Shown here in pieces: positions 882 through 23,721 of a DNA stretch of 32,000 nucleotides (the stretch's first letter is position 1; the number at the start of each line of letters is the position of its first letter). The stretch comes from Guillardia theta nucleomorph. Its lineage: Eukaryota > Protista > Cryptophyta. The stretch covers positions 60,001 through 92,000 of the forward strand of contig AF083031.2 in assembly GCA_000002975.1 (NCBI GenBank). The letters run 5' to 3'. The notes beneath the pieces were generated by a model that saw only the letters and a program-made list of their open reading frames with translations, searched no databases and had not been told where the DNA came from. The position numbers were made by a program, and so were the translations under genes.

Positions 882-926
882 CCTCAAATGATATTTACCA
901 AATTAATATGTTTATTAGTATATTAT

Positions 927-1450
927 TTATAAAAAACGGCTTTTTTGTACAAAATGTTGTGTTATTGGGTAATTTATCTTTTTACCAAGAAATTGCTTAA
1001 CGTTACTTTTTGATGATTCTATTTCTTTGATTCTTTCAACTCTTAAAATTGTGACATCCTTAGGCTTTATTTTGAACCTTCCACCCAATTCTATATAAAA
1101 TTGTTCAACTGCTCCTGTCATCATGAAATCTCGATATTCTTTAAATAGATTAACATAACCATTCTTAATTTTAACTTTACTCCATATTCCATAAGTTTTG
1201 ACAAAGTTATTTTTTTTTTCATAGATTTTTTGCGCTATGATAATTGATCCATTTTTTTTTTTTAATTTTTGTGTTTTTTTTAAAACACTCCAAAATTTGG
1301 ACTTTGCAGTTATTTTGTTAGGAGAAAAATTCTTCATAAAATAAATTGAATCTGATTTATTAGTGTTATTATTAGCCAAACATAAATATTGTTTCAACCA
1401 GCTCTTTAATTATTTTCTGAACAAACAAAAAAACTATTAATACTTACCAT
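927..1450 (-). CDS. rpl18a: 60S ribosomal protein L18a (eL20), spliced: complement join(927..1403,1448..1450), 159 aa, MSWLKQYLCLA...
   Basis: eL20 motifs F.PN.I.AKSKFW..L....KLKK.NG.I, VKTYGIW and NLFKEYRD....GAVEQ.Y.E. The track start at 1397 is a TTG. The ATG at 1450 plus a 44-nt intron restores an N-terminus that aligns with eL20 (yeast MAHFKEY, recalled). Confidence 0.93.
1404..1447 (-). other. 44-nt spliceosomal intron immediately after the ATG of rpl18a
   Basis: ATG|GTAAGTATTAATAGTTTTTTTGTTTGTTCAGAAAATAATTAAAG|AGC TGG TTG. This is the only AG that gives an in-frame join past the in-frame TAA at 1412-1410. Confidence 0.88.
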
Positions 1451-1514
1451 TTTTACAATTCAACACAATAATATATAAATAATTTTATATATTTAAATAA
1501 TATTTTTAATTTTA

Positions 1515-1931
1515 ATGTTTATCATCAAAGGTAATGATACAAGAAATAAAAAAATTAAAAAAAAACTTAAGAATATAGGCTTAGATATAAAAATTAGAAA
1601 TGAAGGTAAAAACATAAGCTTCATAGATAAAAAATGTCCATTTACCGGCAATATTTCGATTAGAGGTAGGATTATGAAAGGAAAAATAGTTTCCACTAAA
1701 ATGGAAAAAACTGTAATTGTAAGGAGAGATTATTTACACTGGATTCCAAAGTATAAAAGATTTGAAAAGAGACACAAAAACATTCCTTGTCACTGCTCGC
1801 CTTTATTTAGAGTTAAAGAAGGCGATTTTGTAACAATTGGACAATGTAGACCACTTTCTAAAACAGTTAGATTTAATGTTATTCACGTTGAAAAGGATAG
1901 GAGAGCTCGTAATAAAAAAATTTATAGCTAA
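1515..1931 (+). CDS. rps11: 40S ribosomal protein S11 (uS17)
   Basis: [59 protein letters not shown]. Confidence 0.98.
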
Positions 1932-1955
1932 ATAATGAATTTTTAATTTAATTCT

Positions 1956-2294
1956 ATGTCAAACTCAATCACTGGAGTAGTTTATATTGAAAATATTCCC
2001 AAAAAAATAACATATAAAAATCTCATTAAATTTCTGGAGAAATTTGGAAGAGTTAATAGAACTTTTTTTTCTAAAGATTTAAGCATTGAATATAAAATTA
2101 TAGGGTGGATTGAATATTCAAAAAAATGTAGTGCTAAAAAAGTATCCCTTAAAAAAGTACGTGACATTTGGGATAAACATATTACGTTCAATGAAAATTT
2201 TAAAATTTTTTATTTAAAAAGTATAAATTGGAAATCTTTGACATTTGTTAGAAAATCTATTTATAAGTTTGATAAAAAGTGCCCAAACATTTGA
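1956..2294 (+). CDS. esf2: Minimal Esf2/ABT1 pre-rRNA processing factor (RRM core only)
   Basis: TGVVYIENIP...KFGRVNRTF...GWIEYSKKCSAK...IFYLKSINWKSLT matches the Esf2 pattern TGVVY...IP / FG.V.R.F / GW.EF..K..AK / KYL..F.W.DLT. Confidence 0.78.
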   Translation: MSNSITGVVYIENIPKKITYKNLIKFLEKFGRVNRTFFSKDLSIEYKIIGWIEYSKKCSAKKVSLKKVRDIWDKHITFNENFKIFYLKSINWKSLTFVRKSIYKFDKKCPNI

Positions 2295-2306
2295 AATAGT
2301 TTCTGG

Positions 2307-2741
2307 TCAGTAAATAAAAATGATATTTTGTATAAATTTTAAAATTTTTGCAATTAAGAAAATTTGAAATTTTTTGCTTTCATATTTTACTATGTTAAAC
2401 ATATTTTGAAATAATCTTTTAAAATTATGTATTTTTAAATAACAAATCTCTAAAATTTGGTTTTCATCTCTAGAGCTACTATTTATTCTCAGTTCGTTAT
2501 AAACTTTAAAGATAGTACTATAAGATAAATTTTTTTTTATTTCAAATTCTATAGGTTCTAGAATTTTTAGTAAAAATTTATAATTAATCTTTTTATTATT
2601 TTGCAAAAATTTTTGAGTCTTTACTATGATTTTTAAAGGTAATATATTTACTTTTTTTAAAAAAAAAAAAATATATAATTTTTTTTTAAATTTATTTAAT
2701 AGTTTTACAATTAGAATTACTAAAAATAAAACTTGGTTCAT
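2307..2741 (-). CDS. Hypothetical protein, 144 aa
   Basis: Long ORF that tiles the gap without overlap. No motif recognised. Confidence 0.6.
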   Translation of the reverse strand: MNQVLFLVILIVKLLNKFKKKLYIFFFLKKVNILPLKIIVKTQKFLQNNKKINYKFLLKILEPIEFEIKKNLSYSTIFKVYNELRINSSSRDENQILEICYLKIHNFKRLFQNMFNIVKYESKKFQIFLIAKILKFIQNIIFIY

Positions 2742-2784
2742 CTTAAAATTTTAACATAAATAAAATTTATGATTTTAAAAATTA

Positions 2785-2928
2785 ATGTATAAGTGTAAAA
2801 TTTGTAAAATATTCATTGGAAAAAAAAATAAAAAAATACTTGACCAGCACGTGAAAGGGAATCGACATAAGATTAATAAATATAATAAATTAGTTAGCAA
2901 AATTAAATATTTTTTTTTAAATTGTTAA
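2785..2928 (+). CDS. snrpC: U1 snRNP protein C-like matrin-type zinc finger, 47 aa (MYKCKICKIFIGKKNKKILDQHVKGNRHKINKYNKLVSKIKYFFLNC)
   Basis: Translated by hand: ATG 2785, TAA 2926-2928. C-x2-C-x14-H-x2-G-x2-H-K-x-N has the same spacing as U1-C. It is below the ORF-track size cut-off. Confidence 0.8.
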   Translation: MYKCKICKIFIGKKNKKILDQHVKGNRHKINKYNKLVSKIKYFFLNC

Positions 2929-2977
2929 CGATATCTATAAAAAGTAATTATAATAAATAATTAATTCTTTAATTAGT

Positions 2978-3622
2978 ATGAAGTTAAAACTTCAAGGTAA
3001 AAAATTTTCAATTTCAAACATATGTTTCTCGTTTTCTATAAACAAAAAAAAAAAAAATTTTTATATTTCTAAAAAAAATTCTTCACCCGATAGAGAACTT
3101 TTCGATAAAAGAAAAATCATTTATGATAATGAAAAAATTTTATCAATTTCATTCGTAAAAAGTTCATATTTCTTTTTAAGTAAATTTTGGGGATTTATAG
3201 AAAAATTTATTTATAATACAACTACTTCTTATACTAAGTATAACTTATTGTATTTTTTAAATAACAGATGTGTAAGAAAAATTTTAAAATTTTCTGAATT
3301 AGAATTATTCGATTTGTTTATATATTTATTTTTACATTTGAAATTTTATTTTATAGACAGACATAAATTTCAATTTTTTCTAAGAAAATCTAATTGTTGG
3401 GTTGTCAAAAAAAAAAATTCTTATCTGTATTTGATAATTAATTTTTTAAGTCAAAAATTTTTAAATTTTCCAATTTATTTATATCAAATGTCATTTAGAA
3501 TAAAACCAGTTGGCTTAAAATTTTGTTTTTTTAACAACAACACAATTCTACTTTACAATATTCATCCGAATATCTTGATTAATCCTCCAATATCAGAAAA
3601 GATAAAATGTTCTTATAGATAA
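2978..3622 (+). CDS. Hypothetical protein, 214 aa
   Basis: Long ORF that tiles the gap. No motif recognised. Confidence 0.65.
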   Translation: MKLKLQGKKFSISNICFSFSINKKKKNFYISKKNSSPDRELFDKRKIIYDNEKILSISFVKSSYFFLSKFWGFIEKFIYNTTTSYTKYNLLYFLNNRCVRKILKFSELELFDLFIYLFLHLKFYFIDRHKFQFFLRKSNCWVVKKKNSYLYLIINFLSQKFLNFPIYLYQMSFRIKPVGLKFCFFNNNTILLYNIHPNILINPPISEKIKCSYR

Positions 3623-3634
3623 GTTATATGTAAT

Positions 3635-4039
3635 TTAAAAATCTAATTTTTTTTTTCTGTCAATCATATATAACAAAGCTTTATTATATGATGAATGAAA
3701 TTTTAACTCAATAATTTGGTTTTCAATACTATTTTTGAATGAAGTTTTAGGATGATTTTTTATTTCATTTTCTTTTTTTATAATAAGTACTCCCTCTATT
3801 TCCATTGAACTACACTCGATTTTTTGATTTATGAACCAAATCCTTCTGTTAGGCAATCCCATTAAGATACCTTGAAATGTGTAAGAATTTATATTCAAAA
3901 AAATTTTAGAATTATTTAAAATTTTCAATTTTAATGATAGATTTTTTTTATAAATATTTTCTTTTAAACTTTTTTTTTCAGTATTTAATTTAAGGATTCT
4001 TCCTAAAAACAATGTTGGAATTGTAATCAGATTAATCAT
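3635..4039 (-). CDS. Hypothetical protein, 134 aa; possibly an eroded TFIID subunit Taf7 N-terminal domain
   Basis: The ORF is clear. Taf7 resemblance is weak but ordered: LITIP ~ FILRLP, GILMGLP ~ KLVDLP, EIEGVLII ~ DI.Q.LV. Confidence 0.6.
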   Translation of the reverse strand: MINLITIPTLFLGRILKLNTEKKSLKENIYKKNLSLKLKILNNSKIFLNINSYTFQGILMGLPNRRIWFINQKIECSSMEIEGVLIIKKENEIKNHPKTSFKNSIENQIIELKFHSSYNKALLYMIDRKKKLDF

Positions 4040-4081
4040 TCAAAAAAAATTAATATAATTTATAAATTTTTTAATTAAGAG

Positions 4082-4325
4082 ATGGTTTTTTTGACTGCTT
4101 GTCTAGCAATTAGAGGGTAAGTAAATATTAATGAAAAAGTAAAAAAAAGATTTTAACTTAAGAGATAAAAATCTTTTGAGATTTTTTCAATTAATAGAAT
4201 CACAGGGGTGTAGAGTTAGGATTATAGAGGAAATATTAGAAGATAATATATTATTATTTAAGCCTTGGTCTAAAAAATTTCTAATCTTTGGATTAAAGAG
4301 ACTTTCTAGGTTTCTCACAAGGTAG
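4082..4325 (+). CDS. tfb5: TFIIH subunit Tfb5/p8/TTDA, spliced: join(4082..4116,4163..4325), 65 aa
   Basis: Product is MVFLTACLAIRGDKNLLRFFQLIESQGCRVRIIEEILEDNILLFKPWSKKFLIFGLKRLSRFLTR. M1, V2, I10, D13 and F19 are in register with human p8. LEDNILLFKPWSKKFLIFGLKRL aligns without gaps to yeast Tfb5 LDDTHLLVNPSKVEFVKHELNRL (recalled). Confidence 0.82.
4117..4162 (+). other. 46-nt phase-2 spliceosomal intron in tfb5
   Basis: GG|GTAAGTAAATATTAATGAAAAAGTAAAAAAAAGATTTTAACTTAAG|A GAT. Removing it bypasses the TAA at 4118-4120 and joins an ATG-less open frame. Confidence 0.82.
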
Positions 4326-4397
4326 AAATCAGGAGTTTATTGTAAGATGGTATATTTTTCAATATAAAAAGCATACAATATATTATTATAGATAAGG

Positions 4398-4979
4398 ATG
4401 TTAGCAATGATCAATAATTCAATAATTAAAAATATAAAATCTACTCAACATAATAAAAATTGCCTTAGTTACATAAAAAAAAAAATTAACAAAAAAAACA
4501 AAAAAACTAATAAACTAATTAATTTTTTCCTTTCATTAACTTTATTTTGGGGAAGCGCGTCTGTTAGCTGTAAAAAATCTTTAAATCTAGCTTCAATAAT
4601 TATTGATGGATCTGTTTTTGACCTAAAGCAAGAAAAGATTATTAATGAAAATTTCCTATTCAGTGATAAAACTACTATAAAGTCAGAAGTTGAAACTGAA
4701 ATAGATGATTTAGATGACGATGAATATAGATATAGTATGTGGAAAAATACTCAAGTTGGGTTGACAGTCGGGGGATCTGCATTAGGTATTTGGTTTTGTT
4801 ATAAAGGTTTAAACAGGTGGGAAAATTGGATGAAAGAGCAGGAACAAAAAGATATAGATGAAGAAATTGAAATGACTGGAACATATATAAATCCGGGTGC
4901 AAATAATGTAGAAACATCTATTGATCCTAAGACTGGGAAAAAAATTGAGATCAAAAAAGAATCAGAAGAAAATAAATAA
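4398..4979 (+). CDS. Hypothetical membrane protein, probably plastid-targeted
   Basis: Basic K/N-rich N-terminal ~40 aa, a hydrophobic segment (FFLSLTLFWGSASVS), an acidic linker, one TM helix (VGLTVGGSALGIWFCY) and a compositionally normal acidic C-terminus. Confidence 0.85.
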   Translation: MLAMINNSIIKNIKSTQHNKNCLSYIKKKINKKNKKTNKLINFFLSLTLFWGSASVSCKKSLNLASIIIDGSVFDLKQEKIINENFLFSDKTTIKSEVETEIDDLDDDEYRYSMWKNTQVGLTVGGSALGIWFCYKGLNRWENWMKEQEQKDIDEEIEMTGTYINPGANNVETSIDPKTGKKIEIKKESEENK

Positions 4980-5019
4980 TGAAAAAATAAATAATTAAAT
5001 AATATATTTATTAATATTT

Positions 5020-6615
5020 ATGTGTGCAAATCTATCTAATAATGAAGACAAAATAAATTCTGTCAAGGAATGTGGTATTAATCAGATTATCTTTATTTCT
5101 GAAAGTATTAAATCATCTTATGGACCTTTTAGTCATGATAAAATGATTTTAAACGATTCAGGAGAAATAACAATAACAAACGATGGTGCAACAATTTTTA
5201 AATCGATTATATTTTCTAATCCTTTGGTAAATATATTTTCTCAGCTTTCACTACAACAAGATAAAGAGATAGGAGATGGGACAACTGGAGTTGTAATATT
5301 TTGTTCAGAATTGTTAAAAAATGCTATGAAGCTTATAAAAAAAAAAATTCATCCTTCTTTGATAATTTTTTCCTATAGATTGGCTTTATGTTATTCGCTA
5401 TCTCAAATAAAAAATTTTTTATCTAAAACTTACGTTAGAATTAACCTATCAGAAATTATTCAAATTGCAAAAACTTCAATATCCGGAAAAGTTTGTAATT
5501 TAAATATTACCAAATTTTCTTTAATATGTTATCAAGTATCTAGATCCATATGTATATTTGATAAAAATTTAGAAAAACTAAAATGTCAAAAAAATTTGTT
5601 GAATTTTTTAAAAATTCAAGGAAATAGTATACATCAAACGAGATTGGTAGATGGAATTTCTATCTTTAATCAAACATCAGTGTTAGATTACCAAAAAAAA
5701 ATCGTTAGTCCAGCCAGAATTTTTTGTATATCAAAGGATTTACAATTCCCAAAAATTAATCTAAATTATAAATTTATTTACAAAAAAATAGAAAAAATTC
5801 GGGATATAAGTAACATGAACAACAATTTCTTTTTAAATATTATCGAAAAATTACTAATATATAATTCAAATTTTGTCATAACTAACAAAAATGTTGATAA
5901 TAATTTGGGAAATTTCTTAAAAAAATTTGGAATAATTTCTTTAAAAAGAGTTTCGGATGAAGACTTTAAAAAAATTTGCATAGTTACTGGGTGTAAGTTA
6001 AAAGTTAATCTTAATATTATAGATGATATTTCTAAATATTGTGTGGGCAAATCAGAAGAAATATTTGAGCAATCAATCAACACGAAAATAATTCTTACAA
6101 TACGAGGTTGTAGATTTTGTCGTGGCAATACAATTGTAATCAGAGGCCCTTCTAATTACATGCTTGACGAATTGTCAAGAGGTTTATGGGATTCGATTTC
6201 GATTATAAAAAAATCATTTGAAGGTGATAAATTTGTAATAGGAGGGGGTTCTTTGGAAATTTTTCTAAGTGTATTAATAGAAAAATTCGCTTGCTTATTA
6301 AAATCTAAAGAACAGATAGCAACTTTAGAATTTTCAAATTCTTTATTAGAGATTCCCAAAATTTTGTTCAGAAATTCATGTCTTAATGAAATCGATTTGA
6401 TAAATAAAATTAGAACTATTTACAATTCATGTCTATTAACAAAAAATTTTGATTTAAAAGACATCGGAGTTGATTTAAAAACGGGATTAATTCAAAATAA
6501 TTTTTATAAAGGTATAATAGAACCACGAATGAGTAAAGTCAAATCCTATCAGATAGCAACTGAAGTTGTAATTTCTCTTTTAAGAATTGATGATGTAATT
6601 TCGAATAAATCTTGA
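5020..6615 (+). CDS. tcp1: CCT/TRiC chaperonin subunit alpha
   Basis: KSSYGP...DKM......ITITNDGATI, QQDKEIGDGTTGVV, IHP, GGGSLE and GIIEP..SKVKS..ATE....LRIDD. The SS.GP/QD.EIGDGTT/SKVKS pattern favours alpha. Confidence 0.92.
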   Translation: MCANLSNNEDKINSVKECGINQIIFISESIKSSYGPFSHDKMILNDSGEITITNDGATIFKSIIFSNPLVNIFSQLSLQQDKEIGDGTTGVVIFCSELLKNAMKLIKKKIHPSLIIFSYRLALCYSLSQIKNFLSKTYVRINLSEIIQIAKTSISGKVCNLNITKFSLICYQVSRSICIFDKNLEKLKCQKNLLNFLKIQGNSIHQTRLVDGISIFNQTSVLDYQKKIVSPARIFCISKDLQFPKINLNYKFIYKKIEKIRDISNMNNNFFLNIIEKLLIYNSNFVITNKNVDNNLGNFLKKFGIISLKRVSDEDFKKICIVTGCKLKVNLNIIDDISKYCVGKSEEIFEQSINTKIILTIRGCRFCRGNTIVIRGPSNYMLDELSRGLWDSISIIKKSFEGDKFVIGGGSLEIFLSVLIEKFACLLKSKEQIATLEFSNSLLEIPKILFRNSCLNEIDLINKIRTIYNSCLLTKNFDLKDIGVDLKTGLIQNNFYKGIIEPRMSKVKSYQIATEVVISLLRIDDVISNKS

Positions 6616-6702: not shown

Positions 6703-7266
6703 ATGAATAGATTATGCACAGAATTAGAAACATTAATTTTAATAACCAATAAAAGAAATTTTAGATTAACTCATACATATCATATTTTAGAACATCACAA
6801 TTTCAAAGAATTTGTTAGACTTTCCAAAGGACTTGTTAGAGATTCAAATTCTACACATGAGATCGATAAAAAATATATAGGAATAAAAAATTTTAATTTT
6901 AAATTTGATAATTTAAAGAAAAACTCTAACTGCAATATCAATAATTTTATCTCATATAATATTGAAAATAACGAAGAATCAATATTATACGATAAAAATT
7001 TTGATTACAGAGATAAATTATCAATATGTGATTATTTTTTGACTTATGAATTAAAAAATTATAAACATTTATTTAAGACAAAATATTCATCTGAATACAT
7101 TATATTTAAATTGTACTTTGATAAAAATTGCTTTAATTTCTACTCAATTACTACCAAAAACTTTTATATTAAAAAGGTAAAATCATTCATATACTCTTTA
7201 TTAGGTTGTAAAATGATATACTCTTTCATAAAAGTTTCAAAAAACAATGAAAAAATAAACTTTTAA
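6703..7266 (+). CDS. Hypothetical protein, 187 aa
   Basis: Long ORF that tiles the gap. No motif recognised. Confidence 0.7.
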   Translation: MNRLCTELETLILITNKRNFRLTHTYHILEHHNFKEFVRLSKGLVRDSNSTHEIDKKYIGIKNFNFKFDNLKKNSNCNINNFISYNIENNEESILYDKNFDYRDKLSICDYFLTYELKNYKHLFKTKYSSEYIIFKLYFDKNCFNFYSITTKNFYIKKVKSFIYSLLGCKMIYSFIKVSKNNEKINF

Positions 7267-17700: not shown

Positions 17701-18128
17701 TTGGATTGCCACTTCAAACTGATGTTTTCGTTGGGGTAATTCATTATCAGCGATTAAAACACATGATTTTAGACAAATTTCAAGTTTCAAATAATAGTGC
17801 AAGAAATCATCTTACGAGACAACCTATTAAAGGAAGAAAATTAGGAGGATCTATAAGATTGGGTGAGATGGAAAGAGATGCATTATTAGGACATGGGTGT
17901 ATATTTCTTTTGCATGAAAAAATGCAAAAGTCAAGCGATCTACATGGGGTCTTTATAGAAAATACAAATTCCGACATAAAAGACTTATTTTTTAACAAAT
18001 ATAATTACAACTCTAAATTTCTATCAACTATTAAAAGTTATCCTAGAAAGATATTTGTACCTTATGTACTTAGATATTTAATTTGTGAATTGTCTGTTCT
18101 TAATCTCAACTTAAATATATTTTTGTAG
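14799..18128 (+). CDS. rpa2: RNA polymerase I second-largest subunit
   Basis: GGYFITNGTEKLIR..I.PRRN, FRSIHRG, WGYLCPIHTPDGSLCG, NQSPRNMYQCQM, GDKFASRHGQKG, FNPHGFPSRMTIG, RLGEMERD. Confidence 0.98.
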   Translation: MNFNCIKRLQSLLKIHLNSYNQIISQGFYFLRQKYFITKNFKEYNSFKGLTSIDFYLSNPIYQFGTLIHKILPRQSKELKITYQGEFIISINIQNNEKNFNLVYKEGDFPIMIKSLKCNLFGLKPHQLTEIDEEEFENGGYFITNGTEKLIRLIIVPRRNYIFTSSKISNTLRGKNFSSFACSIRCVNRYGLSRTFHLHYLTNGSILCRFIIRNQEFFFPVVIILKAIKDVSDTEIFKDITNNLHDNNMFKEVAIKLISDSYNYIKSNFRDNYLEYIGKLFKIFEKKIHLNNLETGKNLIENNLFIHVENDMNQKYLLLIYMIQKLIKSRMGLNLGENPDSIEFQEILLSGNLIGSILEKKLSANFDLIKIDEFMNIENSPIRKTKLIMKVFSNFSVGIRYLISSGNVPLIVNFEIPQTSGFNISIERNNYSRFLSFFRSIHRGKYFTTLKTTSGRKLMPSNWGYLCPIHTPDGSLCGILNHLTISSITSVVNPIERINFLKYFKKHKTIFDRLSFKNRTSIILLDGKIIGFSTEIFLKWFTDKIRCEKVSDFGIFSNSIEIVCLKNENILNLFELKIYSSEARLLRPVRWNSFNSNFNKTNSKNESSFTYNFHTIELIGSLEQSYLNIHQSIFTKKGEICLLYTHYEIDNLNIFSIVPGCTPFFDMNQSPRNMYQCQMAKQSIGIPFHNIWRKMDSKIYFLFSVQIPICRNKINQDGLGLDNFINGFNAVVGVLSYSSFDMEDAVVFNKSSIERGLGMSYIYNTSNFDVNLSMIKNLNKNYSTLHYNCLDGICNVGNALKKKDIILLNNKLVNNKLVRETTINYNNDEIASVDCVKILKNYSKIQSKHNVMIRLKSKRKPIEGDKFASRHGQKGILSFKYEVENLPFSETGIIPDILFNPHGFPSRMTIGMVIESLSGKSGALNGNFNDSSPFTSFLNCNKSYIFGEFLRENGFEFYGKEMFYSGFVGLPLQTDVFVGVIHYQRLKHMILDKFQVSNNSARNHLTRQPIKGRKLGGSIRLGEMERDALLGHGCIFLLHEKMQKSSDLHGVFIENTNSDIKDLFFNKYNYNSKFLSTIKSYPRKIFVPYVLRYLICELSVLNLNLNIFL

Positions 18129-18199
18129 CCATCTTGGCGTAAAGGTAACGCGTTGGTCTTGTAAACCAAAGTTTATCAGTTCGATTCTGATAGTTGGCA
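18128..18199 (+). tRNA. trnT(UGU): tRNA-Thr(UGU), intronless
   Basis: Acceptor GCCATCT/AGTTGGC (one U.U), D arm GCGT/ACGC, anticodon arm TTGGT-CTTGTAA-ACCAA, T arm ATCAG-TTCGATT-CTGAT, discriminator A. Confidence 0.96.
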
Positions 18200-23589: not shown

Positions 23590-23721
23590 GGTTATACAAG
23601 TATTAGGCATCAAATAACTAAGATTGTAATACCAATGTAAAAACTTAATTTATCTTCTAATATTTACACCAATTTTAAAATAGTATAAGCATGCTTCAAT
23701 TAACAAAATCTTAGTAAGTAA
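23590..23721 (-). ncRNA. Candidate structured ncRNA, U1 snRNA-like (ends approximate)
   Basis: 5' UACUUAC, a closing helix (23707-23715 with 23617-23625) enclosing three hairpins that need G.U pairs on this strand, then an Sm-like UAUUUG. Confidence 0.4.

Follow-up and report, generated by a model that had tools for sequence, protein, structure and literature searches.

A missed, probably intron-containing gene for the TFIIH subunit Tfb5 in the nucleomorph genome of Guillardia theta

Introduction

Tfb5, also called p8 or TTDA and encoded by GTF2H5 in human, is a small subunit of TFIIH of about 65 aa with a beta-alpha-beta-beta-alpha fold. Its described roles in other organisms are the stimulation of XPB, the stability of TFIIH and excision repair (PMC7708078, PMC3630102, PMC8617094). 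Tfb2 and further TFIIH core genes are kept in the nucleomorph (PMC6559170). Tfb2 and Tfb4 were reported in nucleomorphs by Zauner in 2019, in a paper whose main text does not mention Tfb5, and our literature search found no description of a nucleomorph Tfb5 gene.

[quoted passage not shown] The known introns are 42-52 nt long and share a donor consensus, and the ACUUAC sequence of the nucleomorph U1 pairs with the GUAAGU donor (PMC6461891). Splicing amounts to about 60% on average and to less than 20% for rfC (PMC6009652). Most of the annotated introns are listed in ribosomal-protein genes, whereas the intron described here lies outside the annotated set and in a gene for a general transcription factor.

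Among annotated cryptophyte nucleomorph genes, the closest counterpart is HAN_2g233 of Hemiselmis andersenii (ABW98059.1, UniRef100_A9BKQ4), which is called hypothetical at NCBI and TFB5 in UniRef, by an automatic label; because that label already exists, the novelty of our assignment is reduced. Chroomonas mesostigmatica, a sister lineage of Hemiselmis, has an orf65 (65 aa, by its name) with an intron verified by RNA-seq, to which the accessible part of the paper's text assigns no function (PMC3514955); this may be the same gene as the one we describe in G. theta. In Cryptomonas curvata, a protein homologous to the second exon of our gene, Cry52Nrm1_p091 (UXY88115.1), is annotated as a 49-aa hypothetical protein that lacks exon 1, and its locus tag adjoins that of p092, the orthologue of G. 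theta ORF193. Published Cryptomonas intron lists do not include the intron in question (PMC9548191), and the same intron seems to have been missed in other nucleomorph annotations too, the truncated C. curvata call being an example.

Results

A split gene model in a gap between ORF134 and ORF193

The stretch of DNA analysed here (the window) comprises 32,000 nt of record AF083031.2, which is G. theta nucleomorph chromosome 3; a record position equals the window position plus 60000. A first-pass annotation had drawn attention to an apparently empty 358-nt gap, and GenBank indeed places no gene call in 4040-4397, which is flanked by the minus-strand ORF134 and the plus-strand ORF193. It had further proposed that the gap contains a spliced tfb5 gene, and on re-reading we found every part of that layout again. 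The features relevant to the analysis are as follows.

1404..1447, minus strand: rpl18a intron, 44 nt, right after the ATG; spliced in run X1 and used as positive control
3635..4039, minus strand: ORF134, upstream neighbour, head-to-head with tfb5 and separated from its ATG by a 42-nt spacer
4082..4116, plus strand: tfb5 exon 1, 35 nt from the ATG (11 codons plus 2 nt, phase 2)
4117..4162, plus strand: tfb5 intron, 46 nt, phase 2, GTAAGT donor and AAG acceptor
4153..4157, plus strand: putative branch-point-like TTAAC, its last base 5 nt before the end of the intron
4163..4325, plus strand: tfb5 exon 2, 163 nt (1 nt plus 53 codons), with TAG at 4323-4325
4398..4979, plus strand: ORF193, downstream neighbour outside tfb5, used as synteny anchor

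The predicted joined model has 12 + 53 = 65 codons, counted by adding the lengths, and a conserved Asp is the first of the 53 codons of exon 2. Read without splicing, the frame stops after 12 codons, as the first-pass annotation had pointed out. The ATG at 4082 is the sole ATG in the 60 nt 5' of the donor, and the AG at 4162 is the sole AG located 42-52 nt from the donor that preserves the long frame. Other ways of reading the gap were tried and rejected. The acceptor AG at 4164 breaks the frame and yields a 12-codon product; an alternative exon-1 frame that reads D-G-F-F, comparable to the N-G-F-L of the orthologues, has no ATG and contains a stop; and, as to a 43-aa ORF on the minus strand (4187-4318), the orthologues align in the plus-strand frame instead.

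When the 358-nt gap was shuffled with its dinucleotide composition retained, models of at least 60 aa arose in none of 3000 shuffles, and a model of any length in 1.9%. The exons are richer in GC (exon 1, 0.37; exon 2, 0.27) than the intron (0.15) and the 5' flank (0.07). Over the whole gap, G. theta RNA contigs show no difference from the reference, which excludes a sequencing artefact there. Taken with the comparative evidence presented below, the gap holds a real, well-supported gene that had been missed. For the head-to-head neighbour ORF134, a Pfam search gave no match, and ORF134 shows no likeness to the head-to-head ORF of the orthologous locus L006.

Exon 2 behaves as coding sequence

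Compared with its orthologues, exon 2 scored 70.7, with a shuffle maximum of 17.9, and it was by far the best among 9427 open 53-aa windows in the stretch, the runner-up reaching 17.6. Against an orthologue profile built without the G. theta sequence, hhalign gave a probability of 97% and an E-value of 1e-10 over 50 ungapped columns; BLASTP gave an E-value of 5e-6. Between 11 and 18 of the 53 residues are identical to those of a given orthologue, and D, F, Q, K, W, KK and R are invariant in the alignment. Codon position 2 is conserved most and position 3 nearly always least, which is the pattern of coding sequence. The G. theta protein is the most divergent member of the family, with 26% identity to the Hemiselmis protein over exon 2 as opposed to 36-53% for the others.

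Used alone as a query, exon 2 matched nothing in Pfam, in the PDB sequences or in the ESM Atlas, nor in searches of 5.8 billion proteins and 1.84 billion representatives. These blanks are not evidence of absence, because 53 aa taken from a divergent protein have little power as a query. Searches treated the two exons of the model separately, and exon 1 is too short for a Pfam scan.

Exon 1 carries the predicted first beta strand. Its peptide is no closer to the exon-1 peptides of the orthologues than shuffled sequences are (p 0.25) and does not have their G-aromatic/N-L-V pattern. In length, exon 1 equals that of locus L017 and the corresponding 35 nt at the start of the Hemiselmis gene, which is intronless, and it ends with the same beginning of a Gly codon as in the orthologues.

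Orthologous loci share the position of the gene and of its intron

Orthologous loci were located by way of the downstream anchor ORF193, which has 43 homologues and belongs to a strongly conserved nucleomorph family with a variable N-terminus, one hydrophobic segment and an acidic C-terminal half; ORF193 has no named Pfam domain. Wherever a locus includes enough flanking sequence, the gene immediately upstream of the ORF193 orthologue is tfb5-like. In H. andersenii this gene is HAN_2g233, which resembles the G. theta gene in synteny, in its length of 65 aa and in its region homologous to exon 2, but is continuous.

An exon-intron-exon layout was found in seven more loci (L004, L006, L008, L010, L015, L017 and L021), which are metagenome and transcriptome-type contigs counted after duplicates had been left out. 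In each, an ATG exon of 32-50 nt is followed by a phase-2 intron of 47-66 nt at the G. theta position, with GTAAGT, GTATGT or GTAAGC as donor and AG as acceptor. The second exon comprises exactly 53 codons from the Asp in six of these loci and in the corresponding part of the Hemiselmis gene, and 54 in L021, and the second exons of G. theta and the orthologous loci align without gaps. Contig L019 is near-identical to L015, minus exactly the 52-nt intron, and L020 is another continuous form, of 63 aa. Whether L019 and L020 are spliced transcripts or genes that have lost the intron, they mark the same boundaries. By sequence and synteny, the G. theta gene is orthologous to this family.

The surroundings of the anchor vary among the loci. 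In L002, L004, L020 and L021, the ORF193 orthologue and the TCP-1 gene are separated by a cks gene; it is missing from that spot in G. theta (window 4980-5019), L006, L007, L015 and L017. ORF187 (window 6703-7266), which has no Pfam match, follows the TCP-1 gene where L002, L004 and L017 have Sen15.

The family is identified as Tfb5 through the Hemiselmis orthologue

The first-pass annotation had named the gene from its length and the register of its residues and had suggested a comparison with the Pfam Tfb5 profile. The Hemiselmis protein passes that comparison (PF06331; 29.7 bits against a cut-off of 23.5, E 6.5e-7), its residues 1-64 covering positions 1-63 of the profile in register, whereas exon 2 of G. 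theta alone does not match. Among the nine members of the alignment, Hemiselmis is the only one to exceed the cut-off; the continuous relatives P0045 and L020 gave no Pfam Tfb5 match, and searches with sequence profiles of the nucleomorph family did not recover a solved Tfb5.

An AlphaFold model of the Hemiselmis protein, computed from a 17-row alignment that included G. theta exon 2 (pLDDT 76), has the order beta1-alpha1-beta2-beta3-alpha2. In a Foldseek search with this model, the top 14 rows were all TFIIH/Tfb5 chains of p8 length, with probabilities of 0.98-1.00 and TM scores of 0.65-0.74 but E-values of just 0.013-0.3. An independent VIA search placed three p8 chains first, in register, with Z scores of 8.3, 7.3 and 7.2, followed by the paralogous C-terminal domain of Tfb2 (Z 5.1, 9% identity). 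The model superposes on yeast, human and Chaetomium p8, with 17-28% identity to solved p8 chains (up to 28% in the Foldseek rows). Two earlier products were set aside, namely a model computed from the single Hemiselmis sequence, which was one long helix, and the Atlas structure matches of the low-confidence Hemiselmis model, which were helical repeats. The nucleomorph family differs from other Tfb5 proteins in being very divergent and in having a C-terminal helix that is basic, not acidic.

One might propose instead that a real, spliced gene is present but that its product is a small nucleomorph-specific protein that merely shares the fold of p8 and the Tfb2 C-terminal domain and is no TFIIH subunit, a view to which the single passing Pfam member and the profiles that found no solved Tfb5 would lend themselves. 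We give it a very slender chance, given that the Hemiselmis match spans nearly the whole Pfam profile in register, that the structure matches favour p8 (Z 8.3, up to 28% identity) over the Tfb2 domain (Z 5.1, 9%), and that the nucleomorph retains other TFIIH core genes (PMC6559170). The sequence comparisons and the predicted fold thus support the identification of the orthologue family as Tfb5, to which the G. theta gene belongs by orthology. The name tfb5 for the G. theta gene follows because its syntenic Hemiselmis orthologue is Tfb5 and because its exon 2 matches the orthologue profile; on these grounds the identity put forward in the first-pass annotation is supported.

The intron and its transcripts

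With 46 nt, GTAAGT..AG borders and a 5' location, the intron falls within the length range and the donor consensus of the nucleomorph class. The putative TTAAC element lies at the same distance from the intron end as ATAAT does in the annotated rpl18a intron. For nucleomorph introns, DURAU has been published as the branch motif, at a distance of 2-6 nt from the 3' splice site (PMC6461891); TTAAC is of the classical YURAC type, not DURAU, and constitutes a weak signal in such AT-rich sequence, and its position is not conserved across the orthologous introns.

Splicing was checked on window 900-5100 with RNA data from four runs, one as raw reads and three as contig sets. A joint 4116^4163, the junction that the first-pass annotation had proposed to look for, was found in none of the four G. 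theta runs, at a raw depth of 1-2x and read lengths up to 60 nt, and the intron is retained in contigs from three runs. The control joint of rpl18a was itself seen in only one of the four runs. Because the raw depth is low, the reads are short, contigs drop minor forms and the control was detected once in four, this is a weak test, by which splicing was neither confirmed nor refuted. The depth in the raw run is 1-3x at the tfb5 locus versus 280x at the 3' end of ORF193, and transcripts of neighbouring genes overlap in this nucleomorph. In run X9, at window 4143-4202, a contig with a depth of about 360 starts inside the intron at a run of A, and the contig upstream of it has a mean depth of 28. 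This step may reflect transcription starts within the intron, such as those of long ORF193 leaders, or else a fork at the homopolymer.

The existence of the intron is supported by comparison among the loci, through its conserved position in seven of them and through the L015/L019 pair, which differs by exactly the intron, and it is probably the 18th intron of the G. theta nucleomorph. According to the first-pass annotation, both a gene and an intron may be added to this genome; the missed gene is well supported, and the intron, of which no junction was seen, is to be counted as probable.

The dominance of unspliced contigs and the depth step near 4143 in X9 could also be taken to mean that a product is made from intron-retaining transcripts, with a TTG start at 4176 in exon 2 leading to a 49-aa, N-terminally truncated p8. 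The C. curvata annotation has a 49-aa form (Cry52Nrm1_p091), and TTDA lacking 16 N-terminal residues is partly functional when overexpressed (PMC3630102). We nevertheless consider such a start highly improbable. Exon 2 of G. theta has no ATG, every intron-bearing locus has conserved the ATG exon and the splice sites, full-length continuous forms are known (L002, L019 and L020), and exon 1 is predicted by the model to contain beta strand 1, which is part of the p52 interface (PMC7708078).

A different question is whether tfb5 is decaying in G. theta. The missing junction, the exon-1 peptide that is not conserved, the position of G. theta as the most divergent member (26%) and the depth of 1-3x in the raw run would all fit a gene in decay, and Tfb5 is non-essential in C. 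elegans (PMC8617094). On the other hand, donor, acceptor and frame are perfect, the exact 35 + 46 + 163 layout has survived in an AT-rich genome, the frame of exon 2 is open and shows its invariant residues and a codon-position bias, and G. theta nucleomorph genes are generally more divergent anyway (PMC3514955). Decay is accordingly an unlikely explanation, and we return below to tfb5 as a functional gene.

Other features of the window

Several observations were made elsewhere in the window. At 2316, close to the 3' end of the minus-strand ORF144 (2307-2741), a base of the reference is missing from all four RNA runs (from 10 of 21 raw reads and, in three runs, from the contigs), and an extra base in the reference may alter the C-terminus of ORF144. 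At 3579-3860, plus-strand raw reads of up to 37x outweigh those of the minus-strand ORF134, as if ORF214 transcripts read through as antisense. A contig joint from 1491 to 2904 that skips 1412 nt, with the ends TT..AT and a side of 22 nt, occurs in two runs and is probably a short-repeat artefact. An uncalled 47-aa ORF at 2785-2928 has a weak Pfam zf-U1 match (E 0.018, under the cut-off) and is a candidate U1-C. A GTAAGT at 23714-23719, between an MRS2-like gene and the P0 ribosomal-protein gene, leads to no useful spliced ORF; on the minus strand it is ACTTAC, which resembles the 5' end of U1 snRNA, and Rfam found no U1 in the window. Rfam did identify a tRNA gene at 18128-18199, directly after an RNA polymerase subunit ORF.

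Discussion

We think it quite likely that the gap between ORF134 and ORF193 holds the functional G. theta nucleomorph gene for Tfb5. The nucleomorph spliceosome would remove the 46-nt intron from a part of the transcripts, and retention would be common, as it is for other nucleomorph introns; retaining transcripts would be unproductive, with translation stopping after 12 codons, and the spliced mRNA would give a 65-aa protein of beta-alpha-beta-beta-alpha fold. By analogy with p8 elsewhere, its three beta strands may pair with the C-terminal domain of the nucleomorph-encoded Tfb2/p52, and p8 may thereby stabilise a miniature TFIIH core and tune the ATPase of XPB in promoter opening (PMC7708078). 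A role in nucleomorph excision repair would likewise be expected, if excision repair has been retained.

The presumed partner is encoded on the same chromosome:

L024 589-1131, record about 104650-105200, minus strand: ORF180, Tfb2; ORF141 lies upstream, with a 380-nt gap between

ORF180 matches Pfam Tfb2 with an E-value of 3.8e-10 and corresponds to the C-terminal third of p52. Its match to human p52 covers residues 307-420, reaching into the p8-binding domain, which appears to be shortened; a comparison with the isolated Tfb2 C-terminal domain gave an E-value of 0.3, and there was no Pfam match for the C-terminal domain. The nucleomorph pair may differ from described p8/p52 pairs in this shortened domain on the side of the partner.

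As to the age of the intron, the sequence comparison indicates that the shared ancestor of the cryptophyte nucleomorphs sampled here already had it, and that it was precisely removed in H. andersenii, whose nucleomorph is intron-free. A much greater age was suggested by the first-pass annotation, according to which the coding intron of human GTF2H5 presumably also lies after nt 35. In mouse Ttda, exon 3 makes up 83% of the coding sequence (PMC3630102), which places a junction near nt 34-37 if Ttda has about 71 aa, as assumed from the human protein; this is compatible with the G. theta position, the phase being unproven. In C. elegans, the loss of exon 2 removes the "C-terminal half" of the protein (PMC8617094), which suggests that the single intron there is at another position, nearer the middle. 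One could envision that the nucleomorph intron is the ancient intron of mammalian GTF2H5, and that near-total intron loss spared it, from the red-algal ancestor onwards, because of a function, namely that it is mostly retained in transcripts and that its splicing sets the amount of p8. We regard this as unlikely; if it were true, splicing of tfb5 would set the capacity of nucleomorph TFIIH for repair or initiation, for example after UV.

The protein family itself is well known, and our finding corrects and extends what is known without introducing a new kind of system; it should be of use to those who work on nucleomorphs or on TFIIH. The G. theta nucleomorph is a textbook example of a minimal eukaryotic genome, and a missed gene together with a probable missed intron corrects its inventory. 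At this locus, moreover, a single intron can be followed cleanly through the cryptophyte lineages that have kept it to its exact loss in Hemiselmis. Finally, with this gene the TFIIH set encoded by the relic nucleus would gain its smallest and most dispensable core subunit, which bears on the minimal needs of TFIIH and on whether nucleomorphs still perform excision repair.
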